Below the pieces are notes generated by a model. That model saw nothing but the letters and a program-made list of their open reading frames with translations. It searched no databases and had not been told where the DNA came from. The position numbers and the translations under genes were made by a program. Of a DNA stretch of 64,000 nucleotides, positions 13,190 to 40,674 are shown piece by piece. Each line of letters starts with the position of its first letter. Position 1 is the first letter of the stretch. Source of the DNA: Podarcis cretensis (taxonomy: Eukaryota); contig OX638155.1 of assembly GCA_951804945.1 (NCBI GenBank), positions 65,782,001 to 65,846,000 on the forward strand, given 5' to 3'.

Positions 13190-13323
13190 NNNNNNNNNNN
13201 NNNNNNNNNNNNNNNNNNNNNNNNNNNNNNNNNNNNNNNNNNNNNNNNNNNNNNNNNNNNNNNNNNNNNNNNNNNNNNNNNNNNNNNNNNNNNNNNNNNN
13301 NNNNNNNNNNNNNNNNNNNNNNN
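13190..13323. other. Assembly gap (N run), adjoining an L2 3' fragment at 13324-13410
   Basis: Run of n. The right flank matches the L2 copy at 46.0-46.3 kb (aaaagcttccct...agggctgccttcagatgtctt). Confidence 0.98.
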
Positions 13324-16909: not shown

Positions 16910-17019
16910 TAAGTGAGGTAGGGTAAGGTTTAAAAAGTTACAATAAAAATAAAATCAGTTATCCATAAGATCAGAAAGCATACTTAAAATGCCTGTTGAA
17001 ATTAAAAATAAAACTTCTC

Positions 17020-19267
17020 TTTTTTTAAAAAAAAAATAATGTTTATTACTTTTAAACACTACAAAAAAGAAAGAAAAAAGAAAAAAGACAAACAAAAAAC
17101 ACACACAATACAATACAATATAAAAACATTACACAGCACTAACACCATAGACTAAACAAAACAAAACAAAAACACTTTAACACACATCATACAATTTCAA
17201 TGTCATATCTTTCATTTACTTGTTTCAACGACCTCCTCACACCTCCCTTTTTGTATTCCACTTCTGTTGATTGTTTCAGCAATTCCTTTCCATCTTCCTC
17301 TGTTTTCTATCCTATAATTATCTTAACATATTCTAACCTTATTCTTCCCTAATACTCTAATAATCTATTTAAACTTAATTCCTTATAACATTTCTACTAA
17401 AGCCATATAACTTCATTCCAACATTTTTCTAACATTCATTAATTTTACAATATTTCTATAAATCGTCTTTAAACTTTTTCCAGTCTTCTTCCACCGACTC
17501 TTCTCCCTGGTCTTGGATTCCGCCAGTTTCATATAGTCCATCAACCTGGTGATCTTCTGTCCGATGCTCTTAGCTCTTTTCCAAGTCCCTTCTGCAGATC
17601 TTCTTCATATTTATACAAAAACTTTACTTTGTCTTCTACTGATCTTATTTTTATTTTCCTTCCTTTGAAGCTGAAGAGTAGACCTTGGGGAAACTCCCAC
17701 CTGAAGATGATTTTATTCCTTCTCAGCAAGGCAGCCAAATCTTCGTAGTTAGACCTAAGATCCAAAAGCTATTTCAGGGCGTCTTTAAAAATTTCAACTC
17801 TTGGCTGTTGTACCTCCAGGCTCCTCCGATAGTGCCAACAGTTTCCCACTCTGTTCCTCTCCCTTTTCCCTCCTCTTCCAAGTCTGAAGGCCCTCACAGT
17901 TTTAATCTCTTCTTGACCCAAGTCCAAGTCCCAAAAATCAGCAAATTCCTGTGTGAGGAAATCTATCATACTTTCCTTCTCCAACTCAGGTAGGGCTCTG
18001 ATCCTCAAATTCGTTTGTTTTTCTTTAAGCTCAATCATAGCAAGCGTCGACCTATGGTCATCCAGTTGCCTCTGCAAGGCTGGGACTCTCTCTCTCTCCA
18101 ATTGTGTTACATTACATTCAGCAGCAACGGCTTTCATCCTAGCTTCCTCCGTAGTCTGCCATGTTAAAGTAGATTCCTGGATCAATTTCTGGATGGTTCT
18201 GTATTGATATTCACCTTTTGTCCCAAATTATTTATACTTTCTGTATTAAATTGATTTTAGTAGTTGCAGCTTCCACTTTCGCATTTGTCACTTCTACTTT
18301 CTTGTTAAGCTGTTCCAGTGAATCACTTATCTTATTTAATGCAACCGCTAAGGCCTCTTCTATCGACATTCCTCTTGATTTTGAATATGCTGGTACAAAA
18401 GCAGTAGAAGAAGCAGCAGCAGGGGAGCCTGATGTAGAGGGAAACAGTTTCTATTTAAGTTAGTCAGTAATGTCCTTTTTTAAAACACAGCTCAAGCAAT
18501 GAAGTTAGTTTCAATTTTCAGTTACATTTACTCCTTTTTTAAAAGCAGACGGAGACAGTGGAAACAATGTATTTCTCTTATTAGCTAGCTGTCAACGAAC
18601 GATCGCTGTCAGTGAACGTTCCAAAAAACATCAGTCCTGCTAGCAGCCCGTTTCCAGGATCTGAGCGGCGGTATTTTAACTCTCTTTGCTCTCTCCCGCA
18701 GGCTTATTCAGTTCACAACTCCCCCCCTCTCCTCCTGCCTCCAAGGGGGGGTTTAATATTCTTTACCGATGGAAATTTAGTCCTTTACAATAGGCTTTCC
18801 AAGACTTCAGCTTGCAGCCTCATTGCTTCAGTCTATTTACAAAAGGGGAAGGCGGACTTCCTGTATTGAACCTCCCCATTACGATACCAAATTAAACGTT
18901 TAGAAATCCAATTCTCCCGCTTCAGCTCTACTCACGGGTAGTTACTTTAGATTCAAATTGTCCACAGGAAAAAGTCAGCGCTCTCTGGCAACAGCTATGT
19001 GGCTTTGCTCCGTGGAAGAAGCAGACAATTCGAAGCACCAGCGCTGCTCACCCCACGTCGCTCCAGACCCCCAAAACCGGGTTTCCCCATGAGTAGGGGA
19101 GGCGCAAAAGGTGCCTGCCGAATCCCACATTCACAGGCTTCTCCCGCCTGTGATTTTTTGCGTGTCTCCGCCTTTGCCGTGGCGGCCAGAACCAGATTCC
19201 CACGGGGCAAATTCCTCCCGATCAGAGGAATTCCGCCATTACTGGAGGCGCCAACCCGGAAGTCCCC
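17020..19267 (-). mobile_element. Non-autonomous L1 derivative (HAL1-like): 5'UTR, decayed ORF1, ORF2 C-terminal remnant, 3'UTR and A tail
   Basis: Perfect 17-bp TSD TAAAAATAAAACTTCTC at 17003-17019 and 19268-19284. CpG-rich 5' end GGGGACTTCCGG. L1 ORF1p-like motifs NLRIRALPE, RAFRLG and FRWEFPQGLLF. Confidence 0.88.
17541..18369 (-). pseudogene. L1 ORF1p-like coding region, disrupted
   Basis: ATG at 18369 gives MSIEEALAVALNKISDSLEQLNKKV (coiled coil). Frameshifts near 18250 and 18195 and an in-frame TAG at 17771-17769. Ends ...ELRASDRRSPG*. Confidence 0.8.
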
Positions 19268-21431
19268 TAAAAATAAAACTTCTCATTAGGTGATGCACAT
19301 TCAAGAGTGGGGAGGCCTCTCTGATTTCAACAGGGGTTCCACAGAGTTGGGCCCAGAGTACTGAACACATGGCTCCTGGTGGATACAAGCCATACATCTG
19401 GGCCATGAGGGATCCTCTGAAGATCTCAGTGACCGATTGGGGATACAAGAAGTCAGGCACTTAAAGTATCCTGGATCCAAGATGTTAAGAGTCTTGTAAA
19501 TGTATAATAAATGCAATGTATAATAAACTCACCATTTTAAGGTAAATTCGCATGAACCCTTTCCAGGCAGAACGTTCCACTGAATTAAATGGGGCTTACT
19601 TCTTAGTAGACCTGTATACCATAATCAGTCAAATGAAACTAGTCTGCCTTAATAACTACTGTTACTATTTTATAATTAAAAGATAGAACCTGGATAGAAA
19701 TTACAATTGATCTCTTTGTCTAAAGTCACAGGCATAGGCAAGGAATAAGATTAGTATTAGTGATGCACTGAATAATTTAGCTGTGTGTAAAACAAATTAG
19801 GGCATGTTCCTTTGTTCATAAGATGGATGGTGCAACAAAGAGGTAGGTATTTTAATATCCTGCTTAATGTCAACTTAGTAAATGAGATTCTTCCTTAACC
19901 TTTCTGCTTCATTCACAAAGATGGATGGCCACAAGGCCCTACAAAGAAAAGCACACAAATGTTTGAGGAGATGATTCAAAGAGTTGGGGCATCTCTTAGA
20001 AGTGGGAATCAAAGAAGTCACAATTTAAAAAAAGGAAAATATGCTTTTTATGCTTTCAACTGAATACCTGAAATGAAATTATATAGAATCACCTACCTAC
20101 GAGTTACCTATTTTGTGAAAAGGAGTAACCACAGGAAACCATGACGTACATACTGTTAAGTGGCACTATTATGTAATGCTTAGTTACCTAAAGCATTTCA
20201 ATTTAATCAACTCCAAAATGCTTTAACTCTTGAGATGTTATCACTGAAACTGACACATTTGCAATGAGTCCTGTTACATATTATGCACAATGGCAGAATC
20301 ACCTGTGTTGAATCACCATTGGCTGTGGATTATGGTGGAAAGTACCGATGCAAGTCCATCAGTCCACTTGATGTACACTGCCAATGTAAGGTTACTTCTA
20401 TGGAGAAGAAGCAACCAATCCTCCAAGGGGTGGCATTGAATTGGTATTGAGAACAGAATTTCAGTCAGTAGGAAGAAGACAAACATTCATACATCTGATC
20501 CTTTCTTTCTTCTTTCTTTTGTTCACACAAAGTCTCTTCCCATACTTCCTGGAATATATCAACATTCATTGTAGAAAAGAGTCACCAACCTTTTTAGGTA
20601 GGTGGGCACATTGGGATTTTTCAGCTAAATAATGTAGATTATGTTCCTACGCTTAATATGGAGAATTTGCAGAACACTATCCCTCAGAAAACTCATTGAA
20701 CATACTGAATGATACATTTTGGCAACATCACAGGGTGGTGTGCCAGATCGATATTCTTTTTCAGTAATGAGATTTGCTTTTGTTTGTTGTGTTTGAATCA
20801 TTAGTGAAATCTTTGCTCCACCATGCCTGCCCAAAAGGCTTTCCAGTCCACAGGATGTCACCATATGGATGCATCTCCAAACAATATGACAACCGAGCCA
20901 ACCAAAGAGCAGCAACAGCACAAAAAGCCCACAACACCTGTGAAGGGCCTCTTATAACACAGGCTTCCACTAGAAAAAAAACGTATCAAGGCAACCACAG
21001 CACAATGACAAACAGCCTTTATAAAGGAACTGATCTAATTATAAAGTTAAATTACAGGGTTCTTGTAAAGAAAACACAATAACAGCAATGAGCCTGGAAG
21101 TGGCTAAGTTCCCAACAAAATCATCCCTATTAGCTTCTATTCATGACTTGAATTATGCCTTTTTATCTCTGCACAGCATTCAGCATTTACTTACCATTAA
21201 ATTTTGAAGCATTGCAACTTTCTGCTGACATTAATTCATTCCCCAAAATAGAAGACTCCAGCCTTTCCTCTGTTAGACATTTAAGCCATTCAGGTGTTTA
21301 TTTCCTTGTTTCTTTCTTGAACTTTAGAACAGCAAGAAAGCTCAGGAGTAGAGGCATGATGAATGAGAGGCGGTTTTCGAAAAGGCAGAAATGTTGTCAC
21401 TTAATCTAACAATAAAAGAGCAGCCTCCTAC

Positions 21432-21646
21432 CTTGAAAACAAACATTTCCCGACGAAGAATGGCTAGAGTGTTAAAATTTCCATCGCAGATGTTGGGCTT
21501 GGCTCCAGGGTAAGAAGGCTTGTCTCCTGTGGGTGGCCGTGGAGGTTTAGGCCTGTCATTCTTCCGTGGATCTGCTGGAGGGACAGAACGATGTGGGGGC
21601 ACTGTTGGCAGAGGTCTTGTTGGTGGCGGGAGTTTGTCAGGTGGCC
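21432..21646 (-). CDS. MMP16: MMP16 exon 6 (proline-rich hinge and start of hemopexin domain), 215 bp
   Basis: ttttccccccaaag|GG CCA... = (G)[71 protein letters not shown]|gtagga. Confidence 0.97.
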
Positions 21647-22737
21647 CTTTGGGGGGAAAAAATGATACTAGCAGATTAACGTCTAGGAGACTGCATACTT
21701 TTCAGTTGATGATGCCATGAGCTGAATTTCACAGGAGCTGCAAATTAAACCCACACGAAACAAGCAAATTTGCACAGACAATCTGGCAAATAAAGGGAGC
21801 TGGTATCTCAACAGTGGATTGCTTGTGGCCCTTAAAACTATGGTATGGCTGAGTTCCACAGCCTTTATCGCCAATCCTACCAATTAATTGGGATGGAAAT
21901 GTTTAAACAGTAATCTGCGGTTAAAGCTTAAGTTAATTAATCACACTTGAGTAGCTGATTAGAGCTTGCAGCCCTGTAACTTTTTCCGTTTTTCTTTTTA
22001 AAAAAAATGATTGCTAAACTTCTTAGCAGCAGAGATAAGTCTTAATACACGGTAGCAAAAAATGTCTGCTGCCAGTGTATTTCCTTTTCCTTCTTTACTA
22101 TAAATTGGGAAATGGACAAATTGGAATTAGTTGCTAGCTTCAAGGCCAGACTACTCACACTGAATTAATTAGATCTAATCAACTTCGCATAATTCCGGTC
22201 ATGCTGAATGTGCATAATTTGGGTTACTGAATTTTTGCTATTTTGATTTGCTGTAAGTTACCAGTAGCTCCAGCTATTTTATACTGCCTTGTTCACTGAA
22301 GCCAAATCATACTTAGGGCAACACTACTCTCCCTGGACAAGAAGTTCTCAAAGAAGAACCTGTGTATAACAGATTCTGAACAGCTGGTGCCTGATTAAAA
22401 TTGGGATCTAATGTCTAGTCATCACAAATAGTGGCTGAGGAGGCAAACTTGTGTTTGGACTGCATCATTCTAGACTGCAGGTTTCACTGAACATCCGTTT
22501 CCTCTGCCAAGTAAGCCATCACTGTGGTTTACAAAAGTATGCATGGTGTGAAATAAGTGGAGATAGGCATTTCTCTTCCTCTCTAAGAACACTGCAATTT
22601 GCGGTCATCCACTAAAATTGACTGGCAGTAGATTCAGGGAAGACAAAAACAAAGTGTTTCTTCATGCAAAATGTTGTTAAGTTGTGGAATCTCCCGCCAC
22701 AAGATATTTGCCAAGGACAATAACCTGTGGGTTAGAG

Positions 22738-22866
22738 CAGGTGTGGAGAACCTTTCGCTCTCCAGACATTACTGAGCTGAAACGTCAATCACTGCTGACC
22801 ATTGGCCATGCTTGCTAGGATTGATGAGAGGGCAATATCTGGAGGGCCAAAGGTTCCCCATACCTG
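22738..22866. mobile_element. hAT-type MITE
   Basis: TIRs caggtgtggagaacctt / aaggttccccatacctg. Same family as the 16443 and 52711 copies. Confidence 0.75.
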
Positions 22867-24304
22867 GTTTGGAGGATTTCATTTGACAGGTCCATGGATA
22901 ATCTTTCAATTGTCATGGTGAAATGAAGCCACCAGGTTCAGAGTACTGGTTGCTAGAAGGCACTTCGTAGTTATGGTGTCATGCCGTGGGGTGGGGGACC
23001 AAAGGTGGTTTACATTTTTAAACTACTAAAACAAATACAAAATATAAAACGAAGAGTGACAAGAGCCAATGGTATGTGATTCTTGGCCTGGGCTTCCTTA
23101 CTTCTGCTGGTCAGGGATGCTGGGAGTTCTAGCCCATCGTAAGTCTACCTTGGGTATGACATAGTTGAATACAACCCTAAATACTTATTGACAAAATCTT
23201 CATAACAGCTATCCTTAGCAAGTCACTGATTCAGTCCACAGTTTCTTACCTAAGGAAACCAATGAACCAGTGAACAATATTTAATCTAAACAGTAAAACA
23301 AAGGCCATTGTTGATTTTATCACTGTGGCAGCAGAATCAGGCATCTTCCAGGAGACAATATCTGGTTGAAAAATGCTAAATCCAAACTAAAGTTTCCACG
23401 TGATGTCATGTTTAACTTCCCAAGGGCAATAAAACTCTTCAAAGTACAGCTTACAGCTGCTAGATACTGGTATTTAGTATGAAGGCAAAATAACCTTGTC
23501 TGGCCCTTCTGTCTAGACTCATGAGGTCATAGAAAACATCTTCTTCTGCTCAACCACACAGGAGAAACCCAACCATTTAATTTCCTCTGTGGAGCAGCCT
23601 GGATATGATAACACATATGCAACAGAGTAGCATCTACCATGCTGCTCCTATATAATCTTCTATCAATGCACCCAATGCTTAGCACCCAGTTCAACAGTGC
23701 ACATTGGAGCAAGAGAATATTCCTCTCTGCCTGAAGCGGCTTGCAAACTAAAACACACACACACATTTCTCAGAAAAGAAAGAAAGTAAAGGAAAGAGGA
23801 AGAGGAAGGAACAGCAAACATTTTGGTGCAAATAAAAATCTTAAACAGAAGTTTAAATCAAACTTTAAAATACAAGAAGCCACAATGAATAAATGAACAG
23901 AAATCAAAGATGTCAGAAGGCAAATTAAAAAATGGCAGTGCTGATCCTACACCATTTTGGTGGTACCTGGAGTCAGCGGGGGGAGTGCAAACCCAAATGA
24001 TGTGTCCATCCCCACCCCCTCTAATGATATGTGTTTGCTGAATTTATTTCTGCATGAATCTAAATTGCATGCAGAATATTTGAAAACCTTTGGGCAAAAA
24101 TCAACCCTGAAAAGGGTTGTTGTGGTGATTTACTACCTTAGCAGCGGTATTGGCCCAGAATAAATACTACTTGTTTTGCTTATCTTTAGGGGGATAATCT
24201 GGCATTTCTAGTACTTAATGGAGAGAGGAGCTCAGTTTGCCTGGTGTGAAAGAAAAAAGGAACATGATGATGAACTTCTGTAAGGATATATTGGAATGAG
24301 TCAA

Positions 24305-24453
24305 GAGAGGAGCTCAGTTGGTAGAGCATGGCTCTCTTAAGCTGGGAGGTCGTGGGTTAGAGCCCCATGTTGGGTGAAAGATTCCTGCACTGCAGGGGGT
24401 CGGACTAGACAATCCTCACGGTCCCTTCCAACTCCACAATTCTGTGATTCTGT
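24305..24453 (+). mobile_element. Short tRNA-derived SINE with a CR1-type 3' tail
   Basis: Head agctcagttggtagagcat...gggttagagcccc followed by the CR1 tail ggtcccttccaactccacaattctgtgattc. Second copy at 32649-32786. Confidence 0.8.
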
Positions 24454-25023
24454 GAGTCAAGTGCAAGCAAGTGCTTCAGTGAAGCAATCAAATGGAAAGG
24501 ATGGCTGGAGTGAAGAAGAACCAGGAGTTGAATTCAAATGAAGACTGAGCCAATGGTTTGTCCTAGAGGAAGTCAGCTTACTATGTTTCTAAGATGACTA
24601 GAGCAGATATAAGCAATAAGATAGAAGAAAGAGGAAAGAGAAGGGCAAAGGAAAGAGGAAATATTAATATTTTAAGAGAAGTCTAGGTTCTCCTTGAATA
24701 AAAAATATTTGTACTACTTGGTTAAATATTGAAGAACATTGTTGCTGTTAAGTGTGGATTTCAGTTCAACTTGTGAACAGTATCTGAAACATGGTGGTTT
24801 GGCAAAAGCCCTTGGCTTTATCTCAACACAGAATCAAAATCCCTTCAAGGAAATGAATACAAACAACAAGAACAAATAGTTATTGTAGTTTGCATTTTCA
24901 TATTTGTTCAGTTGTAAGCACAACCCTCAAGCTACAAAGTCTGACTCAAAATTGTAAGGTAATTCCCAGAAATGTTTAAGAGACATCTACCCCTCCTTTT
25001 AACGTTCTAAACATGCTCTAATG

Positions 25024-25274
25024 CAGGGGTCAGCAAACTTTTTCAGCAGGGGGCCAGTCCACTGTCCCTCAGACCTTGTGGGGGGGCCGGACTATATTTT
25101 TTGGGGGGGAATGAACGAATTCCTATGCCCCACAAATAACCCAGAGATGCATTTTAAATAAAAGGACACATTCTATTCATGTAAAAACACACTGATTCCC
25201 AGACCATCCGTGGGCAGGATTTAGAAGGTAATTGGGCCAGATCTGGCCCCTGGGCCTTAGTTTGCCTACCCATA
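25024..25274. mobile_element. hAT-like non-autonomous DNA transposon
   Basis: Termini caggggtcagcaaact / agtttgcctaccca with gggcc subterminal motifs. TSD not clear. Confidence 0.7.
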
Positions 25275-25471
25275 CATGGAGCTTTTAAACAAGTGGATTG
25301 CCCCATTCACTTCAATGAAGGGAACAGATAGTATGCACACAAGGAGTGCATAAGCAGATGTGCAACCTTCAATGGATGCATAGTGCGCACAACAGTGTAG
25401 GAGTGTATATATCTGGAAGTGACCCATCCCATTAGAATTTTTTAAATATTTTAAAGAAATAACCAGCATAC

Positions 25472-25633
25472 CATATATCTTTTGGATTCCCTGCAAATCA
25501 TCATTAGGTAGTTTGAAGTTGTCGGTTTCCATGTACTGGTAAAATGGAGCCATGATGGCAGTAGGGTCATTTGAATGCTCCAGACCCAAAGCATGTCCCA
25601 GTTCATGAACTGCAACTAGAAACAAATCGTTCC
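25472..25633 (-). CDS. MMP16: MMP16 exon 5 (zinc-binding motif and Met-turn), 162 bp
   Basis: ctccag|GG AAC... = (G)[53 protein letters not shown]+G|gtatgc. Contains HExGHxxGxxH. Confidence 0.98.
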
Positions 25634-27499
25634 CTGGAGGAAAAGAAGAAAGAAAGAGGAAAGTTTTAAAACTGCCTTATCAATGCATTCACTGTATTTG
25701 ACACAAAGCACTTCTTGAATGACTTCAAATCATTTTACACATGCCACCCCACACTTCCTCAGGCTCCCGGCTTTATGAGTCAAAAGTTCCCAAAGGAATC
25801 TTAAGTATGCTCTTCTTCTGTGTGATTGACTCATGTGTGGCAGACTATACGTGTGATGCTGGGAAATAAATAATAATAATTTGATTCAAACCTGGAAAAG
25901 GTGGGAAAAAGCTGGAGAGTCCTCTTGGTTCATGAGGAGACCCTCTCCAGAGCCCAAACACGACAGCAGTGAGAGAGGAGAAAACCCAAAAGAGACGAAA
26001 CACAGTGGGGTTTTGTTTTGGCTATCCAGTCTCCCCACCTAGCTGTGAATGCATGTGCTAGCACATCCTCCAGCCTCCAGCCAGCCCTAGAGCAACAATT
26101 CTAATTGTGGATATTTATGGATACAGTATTTTTGGTCTGGATTGGAGAGAGTGTGGCAGAGAGGGAGCTTAAAGAGTGTTGAGAGGGTGCTCCCCACTTA
26201 TGCAATTTTCACTTATTTGTGCTGCGCCCCTGAACATAACCCCCATGTAAGTGGGGGAAAACCTGTACTGAAAAATGTAATGAAACTGAAAAATAATAAT
26301 AATGATTTCCACAACTATATTATTGAGGTTTTTTAAACGTCTGGGAGCAAACTTTTCATGGTAAGCACTTGGTGAAAAATAGACTTGCTTGCTTTCATGA
26401 AGCTGCATATTTCATAACAAAGGCTATAGTAAGTAGTAACAATTCATCAATTATAGGAATGCAAGCTTATTTGCCAATTATTATCATTTATTAAATCTGG
26501 ATACTGCCCTTCATCCGAAGATCACAGGGGATCTCATTTTGTAAAAATACAAAATGAGAACACAAAATACATAATGAAAACAAGAACAAAAGCAAACCAA
26601 AAACCATCTTCCCACAACACATTTAAAAGGACAGAATATTAATCAGCAAAAGGCTTGGTTACAGAGAAACATTTTCGCCGGTGCCAAAAGATAAGTAATG
26701 AAGGCAGCAGGTGAGCCTTACCCCAAATATCTCAAATTGGAGAAGTGCTTACAAAAGCTGAATATTGACATATTACCATGTTAAGTTTCAACAACCCCAG
26801 AACTAGACTCTGCAATACAACTGGGGGGCTTATTTTCAAAGCACAAGTTTCACAAATGAGTGTACCAATATATGTTTCAAACGATGCTTTCAAGATCCTG
26901 AGCAGCTGAAGTAGTGGTATGTGATGATGATTGTTGTTATTTAAAAAATTAAGTCTGTTTTGTTTTATGAATCATTCCCTCGAAGCACCATTTTATCAGA
27001 GTTCAAGGTCGCTCTTCCGAATTAGAGCATAGGGGGACAGACTAAATTAACCAAGTGTTCACAATGATGAGAAAGTCAAGGGGAATTTCAATAGAAATTG
27101 AATTGACACTTCCTTGCTTGGATTTAGCTGGTTTGTTTCCTCCCGGAGCATTGTCTCAAAGCTATTTCATTGTCTAAATGAATATACACAATGGGCTTAT
27201 ATGTGAGCCAAGTTTATTCTACTTTACTGTTGTCCTGTCTACCTGTAAAGCCATGTGAAGCTAAATGACTCAGTATTTTATTTACTTTATATATAGTGTT
27301 AATTTCTGGATGAAATCCCCTCAAGGTGGAAAAGGATGATATAAAATTACATTACATTTAAAGCTTTGTAATAATAATGATACCATTAATGCAAAGGGGT
27401 ATAGTTTAAGGTACACACAGCCAGGACTTTGCTGAAGCTAAGCAGTACAGGATCTGGTTTGTGCCTGAATGGGTGACAACAGCAACAGATGTAAGCTTC

Positions 27500-27741
27500 T
27501 GCACTTAGGCAGGGAGAACTACCAGCAAGGACAAATAGTACATGTGAAAAGGATCCAGGGGTTTTAGTGGGCCACAAGCTGAATATGAGTCAACAGTGTG
27601 ATGCAGTAGCGGGGGGGGGGGAGTACTGCTATTCTAGGCTGCAACAACAGAAGTATAATGTCCACATTGGAGGGCGTTGCAGTGCATTGGAGTAGATGAC
27701 TATCTGAATCCCTTCCAACTCTACAATTCTATGATTCTATG
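27500..27741 (+). mobile_element. CR1 fragment with an internal deletion
   Basis: gaaaaggatccaggggttttagtgggccacaagctgaatatgagtcaacagtgtg (CR1 ORF2-like) is joined to the tail cccttccaactctacaattctatgattctatg. Confidence 0.75.
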
Positions 27742-30700
27742 AACCTGGGAACCATAGACATACCACCTTGGATTCCATGAGAGAAGAAAAGCAAAATATA
27801 AATTTAAGAAAGAAAGAAAGAAAGGTCAAGAGCAGTTCTTTCAACTGGCCCTGGAAACACACTAGTATAAGGCCAACGGGCACAAAATTGATTTAAGGTT
27901 TTCAGACCTCTTAGCCCCAACAAGCACTCAAACAGCCACATTGTGTGAATGAGTTTGATTCTAAAGAAGACATAATTTTATTCTATCTTTATGTTGACCG
28001 TTATTACAACACTGGATGTTTGAAGGCATTCAGGAAACCTGATAAACCACGAGCAAACAGCAAAAATAAATCCTAGTTTCCAGTAACGAGCAAATAGCAT
28101 TCCTCCCGTAACTACTTTAACCCACTGACTTCCTCTATAGGCAGTTAGGCAACCTGCGAAATTTACATTCCATGCATTCATTCATTTCATTTATATACCG
28201 CTTACCATCCAAAGCATCTTGAAGCGGTTTACAATAACTAAATACATAGGTGTGTTTAAAGATATGCATACACACACAGCCCATAATAAAGCTATGTCAA
28301 ATAAATCCATCTAACATGTAACAAAATACATAAAGAATATTCGTGTCCATAAGAATAATATAAATATAATCAGAGCACTACAAGGCAGTATAATATAAAT
28401 TTTCAAACATCACAACAAAGATACAATTTTCATCCAAGCTCACATTACCACTACAAGCATTCACTACCTCAACCAATACCTATGTCAACCATAGGTGAAG
28501 CACTCATACTCAACAATATGACATCCCCCATAACAAAGGGTCACTGCCAAACATTTGTATAAAATGAATGCCTAATAGTTGAGACACTATACACACTATA
28601 CACATGCCACTTTATACTATACACATGCCCCACCCCTGCTGAACTAATAGCCCTCTCCCATCTCTCACTTGAGAAGGGCCCAAATCTATATCAGAGCTGG
28701 ATCTCATGCTGGAGGGAACAGAACTATTTTGATCCACTCGCTCCCAACTATAGTATTACAACATACCCAATACTGCAGAACTTAAAAACCTAAAACACTT
28801 GGGGTTTTGGTGTGTAGTTTTTGTTTGTTTGTTGCATTCTGTCATATTATATTTTGTACCACTGAAAGTTCAGGCACTTTCAGATGCTATAAACGATTAA
28901 AAGAAGAAGAAGATACAATTCAAGTTGTGTACATTGTGATTCTTGGATCTAATTCAAACAAGCAGTCATACCGTGCAATGAAATCCACCCGTTGCCCTGA
29001 AATTGAGTTACACTATTATATGTGTTCTCACTGCCTAGGTTGCACTGATCATTCCAGTTACCTCCTTCTGTGAGGTGTTTAGCGCTCCACAGAACAGCCA
29101 AGTATAATTCATGGGTTGCCCACCCCAAATCCCATGGAATAAAAACAAATGTATACATGTTCAAGCCAATGTGGAAATAATAGTTTGCCTATGACAAATT
29201 TAGACAAAGGTTTTCTAATTAAGATGGGGAATGACTAGACAGGCTGAGGGAGGTCTTGGCTAATCCATAGAGCTATTCATTTCTCATTAACACTGTGGAG
29301 GAAATGCTCTGAACTGTCTGTATTAAACATAAATGTAGCATATAAGTTTGGGAGTAATGGGGTTAACTTGTACATGAAGTTACTCTATCATTAAGGGCAA
29401 CAATTGGGCAAATATGTAATGAAGAAGACACATTTGTTATTGATATAGTGAGAACAGGATACCTTTTTTCAAAACACAGCTAATAATCTATCACGTTGAA
29501 AGTGGGTGTTTACACAAACTGTATATGGCAAGCAATGTTTCTGTGCAGGCCAGTTGCTACTGAGATGAATGAAAACTTGTGCAGGATCAATGCTCGATCA
29601 ATTCCACCATAACTCACCAGCTTACTTGCATCATTGCTGTATCAGATACCAAGAATGTGAATGTTGCACTTTCAAGCATCTCTGCCTGAAGTCCTCTCTC
29701 TTGCTGTGTCTCAATGCCACATGTGATATATCTACAGTTGAGACACTTGGCTCCCCCAGGGGATTCATCTCTGAGATTCCGCTGGTGCAGGTTCCTGCAG
29801 CACAGCTTGGGTCCACTGTGTCAACTGAGCTGGCAGCAATGTGAAATTTACTAGAAGCTGATTATCTGCAGTTCAACAGAGGTTGGGATTTTATTTTTTT
29901 CATAAATTTCTCCTGGCTGCTAGCACACCATTGAAAATGAAAATAAATAAATAAATGACTGAGCTCAGCCTGTATAGATTTGAAGTATGTTTAATATGAA
30001 CCCTGTGTTTCTACAATACTCAGAAATTGGTGAGTTCTGTTAAAAGACAATTAATTTATATTACTCTACAGGATTTAAGTCACTTTTCAAATCAGGGAGA
30101 CTGATGAAAAGAGGCCATGGGTGGACATAAATGTGAAAATGTATGCATAAAATGCCAGTATTGCAGCTTAATAAGCATGAAGGTTTTCTTCAAGTTTCTA
30201 AGAGTTAAAGCAGATGATCTGCAAGTTCCCCATATTATTTAAAATAATGCATAAATCACAAGCTTGCAAAAAAGTAAAAGGCATGCTCCTTTCCTGAAAC
30301 TCAGATAATTAACCTTGATTTTATTCTGCTTCTGAGAGAGACGCACACTGCATGTTAAAAATGAAATGATGTACATTTAGAACACAGAATATATGTGGTA
30401 ATCTATAAAAAGTGGTTGTCTCTGTAAGAAACCATTTGTCCCTCAGCTAAGAATGTGTGGGAATACCAGAGGAAAGAGGTGATTAGCTTTTAAGCTCCTC
30501 ATCTTCTAAGCCATTTTGACAATGCACAGAAATTGCCCTTCCTCAGGATGTTTACAAGTACTTGCCTCTAGTAAAATGTACTGAACTGTAGCCTTCCTAG
30601 CTGTCTTCACATCCCTAATGTTGATTCATTCAATCTAATTTAATTCTTGATTAAATCAGATTAGCTAGATTTGGTGATTTGCTAAGCAATTGGGTTAAAC

Positions 30701-31131
30701 TAGATGAAGTACATCTCTATAAGTCTCTAGGAGGGACTCTTTCTATACTGAGATAAAATGACAGCCAAAGAAGGGTAATAACTCTGAAATGAACATACCT
30801 CCGGATTTAAGGAACACTGTTTACTAGGGGCATTGCATGATAAGAATTATTATAACCATTACATTTTTATATAATGTGTGTGTGTTGTTCTGGCTCCCGT
30901 CCAAAACCAGTCATTTTTTTGTAGTTAAGTAAAAAAAAGTAAAATTTCATTACAGCCGTTTAATGGTACAAACTCAGCAGCTAGGAAAGAACCATATTTA
31001 ATCCAGGTGCTCTTACAATACAGAGGAATAGCAACAATATGTCCAGTCAAAGAACAAAGGAGAAGATTTGAGAGTCCAAATTAGCAGCAGGAGTTGCAAG
31101 ACTACATGGGAGCTGTGATGGGAGCAGCTGC

Positions 31132-31553
31132 AGAGACCACATAACACCAGTCTTGAAAGACCTACATTTCCGAGCACAATTCAAAGTGTTGGTGCTGACC
31201 TTTAAAGCCCTAAACTGCTTTGGTCCAGTATATCTGACGGAGCGTCTCCACCCCCATCATTCTACCCGGACACTGAGGTCCAGCACCAAGGGCCTTCTAG
31301 CAGTTCCCTCACTGCGAGAAGTCAAGTTACAGGGAACCAGGCAGATGGCCTTCTTGGTAGTGGCGCCTTCCCTGTGGAACGCCCTCCCACCAGATGTCAA
31401 AGAGAACAACTACCAGACTTTTAGAAGACATCTGAAGGCAGCCCTGTTTAAGGAAGCTTTTAATGTTTGATGTATTATAGTATTTTAATTTTTTTTGGAA
31501 GCCGCCCAGAGTGGCTGGGAAGCCCAGCCAGATGGGCGTGGTATAAATAATAA

Positions 31554-31606
<53 letters not shown>
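31132..31606 (+). mobile_element. L2-clade LINE 3' fragment with (ATT)n tail
   Basis: HITPVLKDLH...RAQFKVLVLTFKALN...LWNALP...FRRHLKAALF is the L2 ORF2 C-terminus. Confidence 0.9.
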
Positions 31607-31607
<1 letters not shown>

Positions 31608-32190
31608 ATAAGTTTCCCTGCCTACCTGGCAAGCTTTGAAGCAGAGGTGGAGAAAGTTCAGCTCTCGTGAAAAACCCTGCCCCTATGAGCATTCCTGACC
31701 CAGAGAAAGGTGCTTTTTTGAGGGAAGCGAGTCTCCTCCCTTCTCTTGATGCACCACCTCTCCTTGGGAGAGGTTGCTAGGAGTGCCTCCTCTTCAAAAC
31801 TTTCCTGTCCAGTCACAGCAGGCTGCATCCCTGAGCACCCTTGAGGGAAGGGGCAGCCCCAGGTCTACTACCTCATCAGGTCTGGATTCACCTGGGGGTA
31901 GAGGGCACTTAATCATGTGGGCTCTGCTACATAGCCTCTTACCCCAACTACTCCTTCTGAGTCCCTCACTTTCAGGTACCTCCCATTCCTGATCAGATTC
32001 CAAGGGCTCAGAGGAACCATGACATTTTGTACATAAAAAGAAAATTCTGCTCTGTCATTTACCTCGTGTATTTTATATTCTTATTCCTATATTTGTTGTT
32101 TAAGTATGATGGAAAATTATCCTTAATTGTGATATATTATGGAAATGTCTGCTCTTCTTTGGTTTGAACTCACATTTAGTTTTTTATGTA

Positions 32191-32345
32191 CAGTGATACC
32201 TTGGTTTTCGGAAGTAATCCATTCTGGAAGACCATTCGACTTCTGAAACATTCGAAAACCAAGGCACAAAGGTGGTCTGCAGAAAAATGAAAAAAATAAC
32301 ATGTACACACAGTGGAAGCCATTCGACTTCCAAGGCATGTTCAAG
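32191..32345. mobile_element. Truncated Tigger-like MITE (one TIR)
   Basis: TA|CAGTGATACCTTGGTTT terminus resembles the 8862 element. No right TIR seen. Confidence 0.6.
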
Positions 32346-32648
32346 GAGGTGAGTTTCCTTATATCCACATATCTTCTAGTAGATATCATAACACTACTTG
32401 ATAACATATGGGTACGGGTGATATGTCATCTGAGCAATTTAAAAGCTTGTCCTCTAATATTAATGCCCAAGAATTTTAGAAGTACAGGAGACCTGATATA
32501 AGATCGTTTTTCACCATCTAATGCCTGTCCCCCATCAGGCTTTCATATCAGAGATACCTTTAATCAAAGTTGGAGGATGCAATAATTTACGCAGCTGGGA
32601 CATGGATACTTTGAAATAAGGAAGCGTATTCTTGCTACCATCTCTTAA

Positions 32649-32786
32649 TAGCTCAGCCAGCAAAGCATGAGACTCAACCTCAGGGTTATGGGTTTGAGCC
32701 CCGTGTTGGGCAAAAGATTCCTGAATCGCAGGGGGTTGGACTGGATGTCCCTTGCGCTTCCTTCCAACTCTATAATTCTACGATTC
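32649..32786 (+). mobile_element. tRNA-derived SINE with CR1 tail (decayed)
   Basis: Homologous to 24305-24453. Confidence 0.75.
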
Positions 32787-33595
32787 AAAGCCTATAAGAC
32801 AAAAGTAGATAACCTCCATCCTGTGGCCTTAATTATACCCAGCATGACCCCACTGTAGCCTCCAAGACTGTTTCCCCCAAATCCTACCCTCCTGTCCCAT
32901 GCCTGACATAATATTTGATGTCAGGGATGAAGCAGGTGGAAACACAGTTACCAAGAAATGATCAGAACCCTTGAGGAGCTTGGTGCAGGACCCTTGTTGT
33001 CTGTGCTGACACCGAGCAACCTGCAGGGATCAGCTGTGCTATAGAATTCCCCACTGGGAACTTCAAAGCTGCCCTTTGCAGCAGAGGGAAGTTGCCACTG
33101 GCAAGTCCCTCCTGATGCAATTAGCTGCTTCAGGAGGGATTGCAGACTGGGAGGGGGGCAAAGGGTTAAATTTTAAAAAATCACTTACACAGCAGTCCCA
33201 AGCATGTGCGCTCTACCACAGTTGGTTGCCATGTAAAGCTACAAACAGACACATAAGGCACCGAGCCAAGGAATGCATGTAACATAGTACGTATTTTGGA
33301 AGATGAGTCCCACCTCTCCCGAATTCCCAGGAGAAGTGAGGGCTCAGCCAACAAGGATCCTCTTAAACTCTCAGAAGGTCATTGATCTGAGAACTTTCAC
33401 AGCTTACAGCCCTGATTTAGGCTCACTCCATTTTCTTTCGCAAGTGTTGTAAGAATTTTCTGTAATAGCTTATGGAAGCCACAACTGGACTTTAGCAAAT
33501 GTCTTCAAATAGTTTAATGGTGCTGGATGGTTCGTTTGTTACACTGCCCCTCATCCAAAGACATAAAGACCGGGTATCCTAGAAGCGAAAGGAAG

Positions 33596-35694
33596 ACTTC
33601 CGGAGGTGGCGCCTCCGACAATGGCGGATTCTCCCTGATTTAGAGGGAGACAGCTCCACAGAAACCGGGTCTTACTGCTGCAGCGAAGCGGGGACCCTTT
33701 CAAAAATCGCAGGCGGAAGAAGCCTGCAACCGTGGGACTCGGCGGGCACCGTTTGCGCCCCTCTGTTTGGCAAAGGAGCTCTACAAAGGGCTCCGGAGTG
33801 AGACGGTCGTTGGCGTGGTGCTGAGAGTCAATCGCTACTTCTGTGGAGTGAAGCTGCACAGCCAAAGTCGGAGAGCGCTGTCCTTTTTCCTATGCCAATT
33901 CGGATTTCAAACAACAACCCGTGAGTAGGACAATTGAAACTTGTGGATCAAAAGTATACCTTTGAATTAGAGCCGAGACGGGAAGTGTAAATAGGAAGTC
34001 CGCCTCCCGCTCTTTGTAGAAAGATCAAAGCAAAGACTTTACAAGCTAAAAGCCGTAAATTGACAGCCTGGAATTTCCTGCTCTTTTAACTACCAAACCC
34101 CCCTGACAGCAGGAGGATAGGGGGAAAACAAATCGTGACTTTGCAAATCCTGCAGAGAGTAATTTAAGAAAATAAGTCTTCACTGTTCCTGACCTGGGGA
34201 CGGAATGAAAGGAAAGAAACTGTCGGTGGTGCCTATAACAGGAATATAAGAAATCTGACAGATAGAGTTGGAAGGGGGAAAAAAGTCCAATGCTGCCTTC
34301 TGCCTGATTGTTTTATATTGAAAGGAAACAAAATATCTGAAAATCGAAAGTAACTTTTATTTTCCCTTGTTGGATACACTGTAAAAATGGATGCTAAAAA
34401 GTAACTACACCCCCTAGAGGAGGTCTGCCAGTGCTTTTGTTTTATTCTATAAAGAGAACATAGCAGCTGGGAAAATCAGACTGTGGGACCAGCTTTCTGA
34501 CCTTGACAGAATGATGAGAGAGGAAGTTTTATCTGCCCTGGACAAAATATATGATGTGCTGCAACAGATGGATGAGAAAGTGTCTCTTATGAATCAAGAG
34601 ACGGCCTACATTTTAGCTGCAGTTAATAAGGAGGTGCCAATGGAATGTACAGTTACAGAAATTGCACAACAATCTACCCAGGATATTGACTTAGGGCAAG
34701 CGCATGAAGTTATGAATGTATCTCATAAGACACAGAGTCTTCAAGTTTTACAGGATCAGAAGCCGCAACATTGGGAGATGGAATTCGCAGGACACTGGTT
34801 AAATTGTGGACTTAAGAGAGTTATTATCTTTGGTGGGATTGTGAAACAAGGGGAAGATTATCCTTGGATTTACTACCCTTTGGATTACAAACTAGATATT
34901 GGGGAGTGCAACACTGGGGAATGGGACAACTGGATAAAAGGAGATGAAGAATTTTACTGCATAGAGTCCTCCAGGGATTGGCTCCCCAAAGAGAAAGAGA
35001 AGAAAATACGAAAGAATACAACAGGGAACAAGGATCTATGTAACTACAAACAGAAACAAGAAAACTCGCAGAGGGGGCCTGGAGGTGACTTGAGTGCCTC
35101 AGATATTAGAACGCCGGACTGACAAGGGTGAAAGACTTAAGGACTGACATTATCCGGAACCAGGAAAAGGGACGTTGGAGAAACTTAAAATGAGAAATGC
35201 TTTTGTAATAAATTCATATTTATGGAATTAGTGTAATTCTAATGAAATACTGAGATGCTGGAAAGGAAGTAATTGGCTTTAGCAATGGTTTAAATCTAAG
35301 AATTTTAAAGATTTGAGGACAAGATAAAATTGGGGAAATAAGAATTTGTAAGAATGGGTTGATTATAAATGAAAATATGAGGTAAATATCACATGGGGAT
35401 ATATAATTAAGGGTAAGACAAGTGGCTATGAATTTGCTGAATTAAATTTAAAATGGAATACAAGGAGGGAGGTGAGAGGAAGTCAGGAAAATAAGTTAAA
35501 GAATGTTGAGAATTTGAAAGGAGAGATTTTTATTTTTATTTTTCTTATCTTTTTGTTTTTTGTGTGGAATTTTTGATTTTTGATTACTGTAATTTTTCTT
35601 TTTCTGTCTCTGATGTTGTTGGTTTTTTTGTTATCTTTGTGGTCTTTATTCTTGAGAAAACTTAATAAAATATTATTAAAAAAAAGAAAGAAGA
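33596..35694 (+). mobile_element. Non-autonomous L1 derivative (HAL1-like), diverged relative of 17020-19267
   Basis: Perfect 15-bp TSD AGAAGCGAAAGGAAG at 33581-33595 and 35695-35709. 5' end (g)acttccggaggtggcgcctcc...aatggcgga. AATAAA followed by an A-rich tail. Shares 5'UTR and 3'UTR blocks with the 17-19 kb element. Confidence 0.88.
34511..35122 (+). CDS. Intact 203-aa ORF of the non-autonomous element; highly diverged L1 ORF1p derivative
   Basis: Longest ORF in the track. MMREEVLSALDKIYDVLQQMDEKV aligns with MSIEEALAVALNKISDSLEQLNKKV, EFAGHW with EFADFW, and QRGPGGDLSASDIRTPD* with QKGLGKELRASDRRSPG*. Expression unknown. Confidence 0.6.
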   Translation: MMREEVLSALDKIYDVLQQMDEKVSLMNQETAYILAAVNKEVPMECTVTEIAQQSTQDIDLGQAHEVMNVSHKTQSLQVLQDQKPQHWEMEFAGHWLNCGLKRVIIFGGIVKQGEDYPWIYYPLDYKLDIGECNTGEWDNWIKGDEEFYCIESSRDWLPKEKEKKIRKNTTGNKDLCNYKQKQENSQRGPGGDLSASDIRTPD

Positions 35695-38600
35695 AGAAGC
35701 GAAAGGAAGTGCTACCTCAATCAAATATTCAAGTTGTTTCTTTTAGATGGTGTTTTGTTTTCCCCACAAAACTTTATCGCCCTTGTTGTTTGGGAATTAA
35801 TACAAATGCTTTCAGAGCCACAATATATTAAGGTTTTACTGAGCACTCCAAGAAGTTGTTCATCTCTTTTGAGAAACACAAAATTCAAATTGCCTTCATT
35901 AGCAGAGCAATATAGTGTGGAAAATGAGCCTGGTACTTTTCAAGGGGGATGGCAATTTGCATTTTTGCTAAATAATCAAGCTGTTGCATTCTCCCACCCT
36001 CTTGTAGGACAGAGGAACATGCGAAGAACAATCACTCAACCAGCTAATCCTCTTGACACTCTGGAGTTCAATTTCGTTTTTAAACAAACTGTCACTGAAG
36101 TTCTCGGCTGTTTTATAAGATATTTTAAGTGACAGCAGACCATACAAGGACTGTACTCACAGAAACCACCACTTATGCCAGGAGCTGGGACTGGGGTGTC
36201 TAACTCTGAAGAATACCTTATACCTTTAATCTAGTTATATATTTTGCTCCACTGTGACTTTTGGATGTCTAAGATAGTGTCTTCACAAAGGGACCTTGCC
36301 TGGGGATTTTCGTACCTCAACTCAAAAGGTTAAATGTATTTTTAATTATTTTAATTTTAATTATTTTAATTATTTAATTATTTAAATTAGTTGTTTTGAG
36401 AATTTGTATAAGCTTAATTCTGTTGAATTGTGATTTCCCACCCCCATGTAGTTTCAGTGACATTTCTTTAGTGAAAAATTTAACTAATAACTAAAAAGTT
36501 ACTGTGGCCATTACTGATTTAGTACCCGATGGAAGTAAACTGGAGTATGACTGGAGAGGCTAGGAGGAGAAGGAAGGAAAAGCCCTGTTTTGCTAACAGA
36601 ACTCTGCGTACAGCTCATATGTTTGGGCCTAATTCTGTGAAACTCCCTCCCATTTGAGATCAGATGGAACCCCTACCTGTTGAACCTTTGGTACTTGGTA
36701 AAGACCTTTTCCAGAAGGCATTTTAAGTGACTTTTCAGATTTAACTTCACTGTACACAGCTAAGGGAGCAATTCAATTTAGCACTAAGGAGATCACTCCC
36801 TTAGCATAAGGCATAAGCATTTCTGCTTGCCTGATGGAACAATCTCTTTCCTCCCTCCTTTGTGTTTCATTCAGGAGTTTCTCTCAACACTCTCACTGAG
36901 CATTTTTCCTTTTTTTGGGGGGGGAGACCCTGTTGCACTTGGAAAAGTCTTGCATGGGCTTCTGCTAGCAGGTCTAGTTAGTTGGAATATAAATTGTTGA
37001 TATATACATTGTTGAAGGGGAGTACAAGCAGTGATAGTTGATAGGTGTGCTGTGCCAGGTTACATTTCCTCTTCGTATAACTTTCTTTAGCAGATTGCAC
37101 AAATTCCTGCTGGTGTGAATGCAATTCAAAAGCACTATAATATACTGTATTGATTAATATCCAGCAATCTGAATTTGTTACTGAATTATTATAGTGTTCT
37201 GCACTACTGGCCACACACACACATATGTCATCATCATCTTGTTTGATAACCTGCAGAGTAGATTATTTCCTCTTGTCTAAGAAACACGTTCTGAATATGC
37301 TTCCAGGCATCACGTTGTAGAAAAGGGACATTGGGGCAACACTCTGTGATGTGATGTTGACCCAATAATGCCTCAAGTGACATTTATGCCTGATGCTGAG
37401 AACTGCTGCACCAGGAAATAACTACTTCAGAAGAGGAGAGTGCTGATAATTTGTGATGTTGAGCTAGCACAACGACGATGCCACCCTCAGTGGTGCAGAC
37501 ACTGTAACTATACCCCACCAATCACAAAGGTTTAGAATTTGGCAATTAGAGCCTTACATCTACAAACATTTCACATATCCTAGTATCATGACTTATTGCT
37601 AGACAACCCAATATTATTAAACTGTGGTAACAGTGGTTTGGCAAGATGAAGCAGCACAGCTGTAGCCACTCTAATATCTCCCCCTTGAAAGTGCAACTTT
37701 TCCTCGCATCAGTATCTCTTCAAAAGCCTAGAGATACAGTAAACAGTGCCTCCCTCAGCGCAGCTGCAGTAATCAGCCATGCCCCTTGCACCAGCTTGAG
37801 AACCCAGAATTTTGATCCAAGATGCTTTGGCTTTAACACCAACTCCTACACTGCAAGACCCACAACAAAGCGAAAAAGAGTCAATTCCAAAACCATTTGT
37901 AAATTTGATCTTTAGTGAGCAGATCAAAGGAAATGCATTGCAGTGGGTATCTGACGTGTTTCTCTGGTTAGGTCTTTAATTAAAATTCTATCCCATAGCA
38001 TTTTCTTCGGCTGCTGCTTTGCTATTGAGGTTCCTGAATTACCAAATGCTTCCTCTGATGCCGAGGTGAGATTTAAAGCTCTAAGTACACAGTAAACCAT
38101 GAGCGGCAGAGTTCATTTTGCTGTCAAGGGGATAGGATTTCATCTGACATAAGTGAGAATCCTATAGGTTTCTGTGATAGTTGAGATCAATAAACTGCTG
38201 TCTTATTGAGCCTGCCACGCTGAAAAAAAAAATGCACCATTTAGATGTGTTACTATGCTGGACTCATCCTAGGTAGTATTAGATTAAATCCTTGTTACGG
38301 ATATTTAAATGCAAACATTGTTCAATAAAAGCCCGAGTTGGGGGGGGGGAGGTGGATCCCTGAAAAAGAAAAGAAAAAAAGTGTCCACAGTTACCCCAAA
38401 CCAATCAATAAACCTCAATATACATTTTGTATGCTCATAAAGCCTTAATTACCAATTCTAGCCTTTTCTCCTTGAAGGACATTTTAATTTGAGTTCAGGA
38501 TATAGTTCCTTCCTTTTACAGACATCACAGATAACTATTTTGCCTTAAAAACCATATTGTTTGAACCGGACATCATGCAGCAAGCAAATCCATTTAATGT

Positions 38601-40320: not shown

Positions 40321-40674
40321 TAGTATCTGTTCACGCACCAAAAGTTACAATATATGCTATTAGCTTTAAAAATAATAATTCCCAGACATAACATTAACCA
40401 GGAGATAAATCTTTACATTGTTTTATAGCATACAGTATGTTCAAAATAAAGCCAAGCTCATCGTTTCTGTGAGATAGGAAATTGTGCGACAGGAGATTCC
40501 TAGCGTTCCTTTTGCAAAGTTAAATCCAATTGCCAGCAACATTACCGACACTGAAATGCAGCCATGGTGGCTGCTGGGTGCCACATTTAGGTATGCAATC
40601 AACCTTCGGTTCTGTATGTACATAATGTACTAGAGATAGAAATGGAGGCTGTTTAAGTATAACTGGGTTCTTAC

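Follow-up and report, generated by a model that had tools for sequence, protein, structure and literature searches.

A probable half-L1 family of ORF1-only retroelements in lacertid lizards

How do elements that encode neither an endonuclease nor a reverse transcriptase (RT) come to be present in a lizard genome as complete insertions, and do two such elements found close to each other reflect chance deletions or a family of their own? This question is raised by a stretch of 64,000 nucleotides of Podarcis cretensis DNA (assembly GCA_951804945.1, contig OX638155.1, positions 65,782,001 to 65,846,000 of the forward strand), which is referred to below as the window and to which coordinates refer unless otherwise stated. 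It harbors two related full-length derivatives of the retrotransposon L1, denoted copy 1 (17020−19267, minus strand, 2248 bp) and copy 2 (33596−35694, plus strand, 2099 bp, a young insertion), both of the ORF1-only type, i.e., with a coding region related to the first L1 open reading frame (ORF). A preliminary description of this DNA interpreted the pair as a long-lived replicating lineage. The data discussed below lead us to conclude, with a probability of about 0.8, that both elements are full-length members of a lacertid family of non-autonomous L1 elements of the half-L1 (HAL1) type.

According to this reading, a member of the family would be composed of a CpG-rich 5′ untranslated region (5′UTR), which opens with an ETS-like site next to a YY1-like one and presumably acts as an L1-style internal promoter, followed by ORF1, the last ~40 codons of ORF2 placed directly after the ORF1 stop, an L1 3′UTR, a poly(A) signal and an A tail, while ~3.5 kb coding for the endonuclease and the RT would be missing. 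The element would be transcribed from its own promoter, and its RNA would be copied into T|purine-rich targets by ORF2p that autonomous L1s resident in this genome provide in trans, a process expected to leave target-site duplications (TSDs) of 15−17 bp. The retained ORF2 tail and the 3′UTR may help the element to get picked up. ORF2 fragments of autonomous L1s exist in the Podarcis protein sets.

Architecture of the two insertions

The limits of the elements, their perfect TSDs and their A-rich tails, all noted in the preliminary description, were borne out. Copy 1 is flanked by the 17-bp sequence GAGAAGTTTTATTTTTA (17/17 match; on the minus strand, the 5′ copy is at 19268−19284 and the 3′ copy at 17003−17019) at a target site that reads T|GAGAAG, and copy 2 by the perfect 15-bp duplication AGAAGCGAAAGGAAG (plus strand, 33581−33595 and 35695−35709). 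The target of both insertions is T|purine-rich, i.e., an L1-endonuclease-like site. Segmental duplication was rejected as an explanation, each copy having its own perfect TSD.

The 5′UTR of copy 1 (18370−19267, minus strand) begins with extra G residues, a known mark of full-length L1 copies, after which follow an ETS-like motif, ACTTCCGG, and a YY1-like motif, AATGGCGG; the same start motifs are found at the beginning of the copy 2 5′UTR (33596−34510, plus strand). The first 350 nucleotides are CpG-rich in both elements, with a GC content of 0.57 and an observed/expected CpG ratio of 0.77 in copy 1, and 0.56 and 0.85, respectively, in copy 2, as compared to a CpG ratio of 0.24 for the window. 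At the other end, the 3′UTRs (17020−17428, minus strand, and 35255−35694, plus strand) are each composed of a T-rich tract followed by AATAAA and a short A-rich tail, and each contains a conserved purine-rich block, at 17195−17263 (minus strand) in copy 1 and at 35451−35519 (plus strand) in copy 2.

Comparison of the two copies identified them as collinear homologues, with ~70−80% identity in blocks. Counted within each element rather than in window positions, the shared blocks are copy 1 5−167 with copy 2 1−164 (70% identity, E 5e-14), 283−340 with 276−333 (80%, E 5e-8), 1805−1871 with 1623−1687 (73.5%, E 0.001) and 2005−2073 with 1856−1924 (74%, E 2e-7), such that the significant similarity is located in the 5′UTR and at the start and in the middle of the 3′UTR. 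The shared 5′ start and UTR blocks listed in the preliminary description are therefore real and collinear, with E values from 0.001 to 5e-14. No further copy of either element was found within the 64-kb window, and scans with Rfam and for tRNAs and tandem repeats gave no small-RNA head or 5′ monomers. Folding of the conserved 3′ block of both copies gave no structure beyond that of shuffled sequences (z +1.1 and +0.05), so that a stem-loop recognition signal is not supported.

The point at which the ORF ends is central to the argument. In copy 1, a remnant of the last ~42 L1 ORF2 codons (17429−17540, minus strand) directly abuts the ORF1 stop. Podarcis ORF2 fragments that reach the natural C-terminus, found in a search with the ORF2 part of the protein P0004 (described below), served as reference: the last 32 residues of P0016, an ORF2 fragment from Podarcis lilfordi, match window positions 17527−17432 at 84% identity (E 3.7e-17 pairwise and 1.9e-11 against the whole window), while the ten preceding residues (MDYM.LAE) are found in another frame and begin at the ORF1 stop codon itself. 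What copy 1 retains is accordingly the end of ORF2 minus 13 nucleotides, a loss that shifts the frame. The identity of this tail is lower to two other Podarcis ORF2 fragments, P0017 (65%) and P0019 (59%).

In copy 2, the corresponding remnant (35132−35254, plus strand) is decayed. It gave no protein-level match to the Podarcis ORF2 fragments, but the DNA after the stop aligns with the copy 1 tail through the ORF2 stop at ~63% identity (z scores relative to shuffles: tail, ~6; wider region, ~10). The proposal that the ORF1 stop runs straight into an ORF2 remnant in both elements was thus confirmed from protein similarity for copy 1, and for copy 2 it stands as DNA homology and fails at the level of protein. 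A 9-nucleotide insertion in copy 2 creates an early stop; the ancestral P-G-stop (stop codon at 35129−35131, plus strand), which is common to copy 2, copy 1 and the P. lilfordi proteins discussed below, is found 9 nucleotides further on and the tail follows immediately. Because both copies share this ancestral P-G-stop directly followed by the tail once the insertion is allowed for, the breakpoint is identical in the two, in agreement with the original claim of a common junction.

The claimed absence of endonuclease and RT also held. Neither the ORF lists nor a search with the Podarcis ORF2 fragments revealed sequence of either kind in the two elements or elsewhere in the window; the sole match of these fragments in the window was to the 32 terminal codons in copy 1.

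A junction located exactly at the ORF1 stop would also be compatible with copies that were dead on arrival, i.e., one-off retrocopies of spliced or internally deleted transcripts of autonomous L1s with no self-propagating lineage behind them. L1 RNAs can be spliced and the products retrotransposed, as exemplified by human spliced integrated retrotransposed elements (SpIREs). No AG acceptor is apparent in the ORF2 codons expected ahead of the tail (…K-A|M-D-Y), a weak counterargument as it is judged from the protein. Stronger objections arise from the mini-ORF1 of copy 2 and from the distribution of the family, and together they make this explanation very improbable, as discussed below.

Descent of the coding regions from L1 ORF1

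The coding region of copy 1 (17541−18369, minus strand) is a decayed ORF1 that corresponds to the coiled coil, RNA-recognition motif (RRM) and C-terminal domain (CTD), and is broken by two frameshifts, in-frame stops and a short deletion in the RRM. Its assignment is based on homology to two lacertid proteins, P0005 and P0004. P0005 is a 356-residue ORF1p, residues 91−308 of which are 49.6% identical to the copy 1 ORF1 over 228 residues (E 2.6e-61), and copy 1 aligns along its coiled-coil, RRM and CTD architecture. The best matches of P0005 among Protein Data Bank (PDB) sequences are to human L1 ORF1p (2ykp, E 0.0046; 2ldy, E 0.027), with an alignment that is collinear across all three parts. 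The AlphaFold2 (AF2) model of P0005 has a predicted local distance difference test (pLDDT) score of 57 overall, with higher values in the coiled coil and the CTD; it is composed of a long helix, a beta-alpha-beta-beta-alpha-beta unit and a CTD, matching 2ykp, 2yko, 2ykq and 2ldy, and its top ten Foldseek matches are all to human L1 ORF1p (E 1e-8 to 2e-7).

P0004, from Podarcis raffonei (LOC128406054), contains the N-terminal half of a copy-1-like ORF1, 74% identical to copy 1, fused in frame to a segment that matches human L1 ORF2p residues ~752−882 (E 3.9e-15). This protein represents another kind of internally deleted L1 that has been filed as an annotated host gene.

The copy 2 ORF (34511−35122, plus strand) is open and encodes 203 residues. 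It had been described as an ORF1, which is correct as to its descent, but it is not a normal ORF1, being internally shortened, and it is referred to here as a mini-ORF1. An exhaustive phmmer search with this sequence yielded two relatives only, a Logan protein (91% identity) and a P. lilfordi hypothetical protein (35%); a profile search added two more P. lilfordi proteins of ~200 residues and three longer ones. A profile built from the mini-ORF1, which has ~200-residue relatives in P0001−P0003 and P0007, aligns to that of the long ORF1 with an hhalign probability of 97.4% (E 9e-12). The two profiles align collinearly except for two large gaps, which correspond to the loss of the latter half of the coiled coil and the bulk of the RRM; what the mini-ORF1 keeps is the N-terminal helix, a CTD that has become degenerate and a tail that is conserved at the C-terminus. 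The N-terminus is 32% identical to that of copy 1, and the C-terminal 55 residues are 51% identical (tblastn with P0002, E 9e-12). All mini-ORF1 proteins share with copy 1 the tail motif LRASD.R.PG, placed immediately before the stop, while P0005 does not have this motif and extends past that point.

Several other searches were uninformative: a phmmer comparison of the window ORFs with PDB sequences yielded no useful match, the 138-residue piece of copy 1 had no match in a word-based protein search, the ESM Atlas returned no usable match for the window ORFs, and a profile search of the PDB with the long-ORF1 alignment gave generic coiled coils only. Taken together, the alignments and structural models indicate that the coding region of both elements descends from L1 ORF1. 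The family is divided into two subfamilies, one represented by copy 1 with its long, now decayed ORF1, and one represented by copy 2 with its open 203-residue mini-ORF1. As regards an intact ORF1p, the copy 2 ORF is open but shortened, and that of copy 1 is broken by frameshifts and stops.

Whether the mini-ORF1 protein has a function is a separate issue. Intact ORFs of ~200 residues with a mutual identity of only 35% have their two ends in common. Of the 95 insertions and deletions among the family contigs, the 12 with the best support are all located outside the ORF, which constitutes 29% of the element (chance ~0.016). The sequence variants seen in the mini-ORF in other family copies are 7 synonymous and 14 non-synonymous. 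The AF2 model shows a helix at residues 2−41 only and low confidence for the rest (pLDDT 35.8), and a predicted complex of three chains of residues 1−60 scored 0.17, a value that bears neither way on self-association. We therefore only tentatively raise the idea, and consider it doubtful, that the mini-ORF1p is a new kind of protein, functional and under selection, which would have shed the RRM and kept the N-terminal coiled-coil helix together with the tail G.G.DL.ASDIR.PG. If true, such a protein would let an ORF2-less element capture L1 ORF2p or co-assemble with L1 ORF1p, and the family would be a hyper-parasite of L1 that encodes a protein of its own and is active in wall lizards at present.

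The mini-ORF1 also bears on two of the alternatives. An autonomous master element is unlikely to tolerate its large internal RRM deletions, and diverged intact mini-ORFs are found in P. lilfordi; both observations speak against dead-on-arrival copies. On the other hand, the fact that open ORFs of ~200 residues are annotated as hypothetical proteins in Podarcis genomes could suggest a host gene, either a domesticated ORF1-derived family comparable to mammalian L1TD1 or processed pseudogenes of such a gene. All parts outside the ORF are, however, L1-like and travel with it, the ORF of copy 1 is decayed, the copy 2 locus is empty in two related species and hundreds of dispersed contigs match (see below). 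A host retrogene was rejected on these grounds, and we regard this explanation as exceedingly improbable.

Copy number, recent insertion and origin

Read evidence is used here throughout in the form of assembled contigs. Logan contigs from four runs, representing four species, were placed on window positions 33000−36300 at identities of at least 80%, which yielded 1073, 938, 769 and 337 contigs on copy 2. In the run from the same species, 128 of these contigs show at least 99% identity, 176 are in the range 95−99%, 344 in the range 90−95%, and 425 are below 90%. The ORF is covered by a contig spanning 34517−34925 with 10 differences, and the junction from the ORF end into the tail and 3′UTR is bridged by contigs at 35049−35313 (2 differences) and 35096−35276, as well as, in the most distant species, at 34898−35249. 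The k-mer depth of the family contigs is ~4−16 times that of a contig from the single-copy flank, which is read only as "multi-copy" because depth is not a copy number.

The coverage is uneven. The purine-rich 3′ block (35442−35552) is by far the most repeated part in the contigs of all four species, and the 5′UTR part 33666−33998 is likewise far more repeated than the ORF. This excess is expected if these segments are shared with other L1 lineages and with 5′-truncated copies.

Since copy 2, with its passage from the ORF to the tail, is covered by hundreds of contigs in four species, the data point to a replicating ORF2-less family; at least four species carry the copy 2 subfamily in multiple copies, and it has been recently active. 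Chance deletions as the source of the two copies were rejected on the basis of this multi-copy family with its junction-bridging contigs in four species. The same shortened ORF and junction in many near-identical as well as diverged contigs also argue against dead-on-arrival retrocopies. Hence, of the earlier proposal of a long-lived lineage, the replicating family is borne out in four species, and a single ancient origin is no more than likely.

The locus of copy 2 illustrates how recent this activity has been. Contigs of two other species join position 33580 to 35695, skipping 2114 bases, and the 15 letters at the joint fit either side, i.e., they constitute the single TSD copy of the empty site. 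One of these contigs is 1069 bp long and spans both flanks with ~1.7% differences, and the second species shows flank differences of ~4−7% around the locus. A same-species contig crosses the 5′ junction of the element with no differences. Since the site is empty in two related species, copy 2 was inserted after a very recent split, namely that of the host from the species that differs by ~1.7% in the flanks.

Did the two subfamilies arise from a single event? A single founding deletion, reflected in the shared ORF1-stop/ORF2-tail junction and followed by long diversification, is the scenario to which we give somewhat better than even odds, because the junction is identical, the tail motif is absent from P0005 and the UTR blocks are collinear. 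A competing view holds that the long-ORF1 and mini-ORF1 types arose separately by the same deletion, through a template jump of the RT or a deletion at a favored site, or that one of them swapped its 3′ part with an L1 by template switching onto a contemporary element; the shared junction would then not date one ancient founder. This view draws on the observation that the copy 1 ORF2 tail nests inside present-day Podarcis ORF2 diversity, as seen from its identities to P0016, P0017 and P0019 (84%, 65% and 59%), and that the ORF1 of copy 1 shows 74% identity to P0004 and 50% identity to P0005, while copies 1 and 2 are only ~63% identical in tail DNA and ~32−51% at the ORF ends. In addition, P0004 demonstrates that another internally deleted form of L1 is known in lacertids. 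Against it stand the location of the junction at the same nucleotide in both copies once the 9-nucleotide insertion is allowed, the LRASD.R.PG-stop shared by copy 1 and all mini-ORF1 proteins and absent from P0005, and the collinearity of the 5′UTR and 3′UTR blocks throughout. Overall, we consider separate origins or 3′ exchange rather unlikely.

The fact that copy 1 is closer to ORF2-bearing or long-ORF1 Podarcis L1s than to copy 2 nevertheless leaves room for recurrent origin or exchange of the 3′ end. To fit a single origin, the lineage of copy 2 must have evolved at a much higher rate. Three scenarios are thus compatible with the data, namely a faster-evolving copy 2 lineage, exchange of 3′ or 5′ parts with an L1 by template switching, and recurrent deletion.

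This proximity of copy 1 to other L1s, both in the tail (84% to P0016) and in ORF1 (50−74% to long ORF1 sequences), is one of several points that weigh against the assignment of both copies to one half-L1 family. The reliance on L1 ORF2p is presumed from hallmarks only. Furthermore, Pfam Transposase_22 gave no match to the ORF pieces of the window (E up to 1) or to P0002−P0007 (E up to 10). Finally, the 7 synonymous and 14 non-synonymous variants and a predicted structure that is mostly disordered give no clear sign of selection on the mini-ORF. With these reservations, membership in a lacertid half-L1 family is the reading that we prefer.

As regards the surroundings, two ORFs on the minus strand match Pfam Peptidase_M10 (matrixin), at 40520−41017 (E 2.8e-30) and 25266−25625 (E 3.2e-21), and look like exons of a matrix metalloproteinase gene. 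Copy 2 is located between them in antisense orientation and is probably intronic, and copy 1 is found downstream of them in sense orientation. A SINE-like (short interspersed nuclear element) repeat of ~200−330 nucleotides is present in three copies with 78−86% identity (16571−16900, 53935−54273 and 47512−47683), one of which directly adjoins the 3′ flank of copy 1. The window also contains four copies of a 69-nucleotide repeat (24382−24450, 27669−27737, 32718−32786 and 40252−40320; ends ..CCTTCCAACTC..ATTCTATGATTC), which we take to resemble the 3′ ends of CR1-type long interspersed nuclear elements (LINEs), as well as a perfect (TTA)n microsatellite of 16.7 units (31556−31605) and N stretches at 13190−13323 and 58111−58279, each directly followed by a repeat copy (13324−13407 and 58280−58458, respectively).

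Significance and relation to known systems

No report of HAL1-like elements in lizards, Podarcis or Anolis was found in the literature, Dfam and Repbase being outside this search, and the family may sit unnamed in automated repeat libraries. An immediate consequence concerns annotation, as Podarcis genome annotations at present list such ORFs as hypothetical proteins of the host. Half-L1 elements are known as old fossils of mammalian genomes, and no living example is known to have been used to test how an ORF2-less L1 competes for ORF2p in the face of L1 cis-preference. Lizards offer a young family with intact copies, insertions that differ between closely related species, and both long-ORF1 and RRM-less mini-ORF1 variants. 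Questions that this family makes accessible include the need for ORF1p in cis, the 3′ sequences that ORF2p recognizes (candidates being the ORF2 tail and the purine-rich block with its many repeats), and the frequency at which non-autonomous L1 lineages arise.

Compared to autonomous vertebrate L1 elements with a Type II ORF1p, the lizard elements share the ORF1 fold family (via P0005), the C-terminal ORF2 codons, the poly(A) signal and tail, TSDs of 15−17 bp, a T|purine target and a YY1-like 5′ site. They differ in having no endonuclease, RT or cysteine-rich domain and in their length, 2.1−2.25 kb as compared to ~6 kb. They resemble human SpIREs in being L1 copies that have a precise gap in their interior and were inserted by the L1 machinery; SpIREs are, however, sporadic dead ends, whereas the lizard elements form a diversified multi-copy family in several species. 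Shortened ORF1 products from non-functional L1 loci offer a further parallel: a study of truncated human ORF1 proteins concerns the suppression of L1 by them in trans (PMC5605252). The lizard mini-ORF1p might favor its own RNA, interfere with L1 or have no effect.

The closest known system is mammalian HAL1. ORF1p is the sole product encoded by HAL1, which originated on several occasions in mammals (PMC5753468, where Smit 1999 and Bao & Jurka 2010 are among the works cited for these elements). In both mammals and lizards, non-autonomous L1 derivatives have kept the 5′ region and ORF1 without ORF2, carry L1-type insertion marks and form their own families. In contrast to the mammalian elements, the ORF1 of the lizard elements is not recognized by Pfam Transposase_22, its stop is immediately followed by ~40 codons from the end of ORF2, and one subfamily encodes a mini-ORF1 of ~200 residues that lacks most of the RRM. 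Human HAL1 copies are ancient fossils, whereas the mini-ORF1 subfamily of lizards has been active very recently. Apart from recognition by Transposase_22 and from an ORF1 that is shortened in copy 2 and broken in copy 1, the defining features of HAL1 are found in the lizard elements, and the comparison thus supports the view that they are the lizard counterpart of mammalian HAL1.

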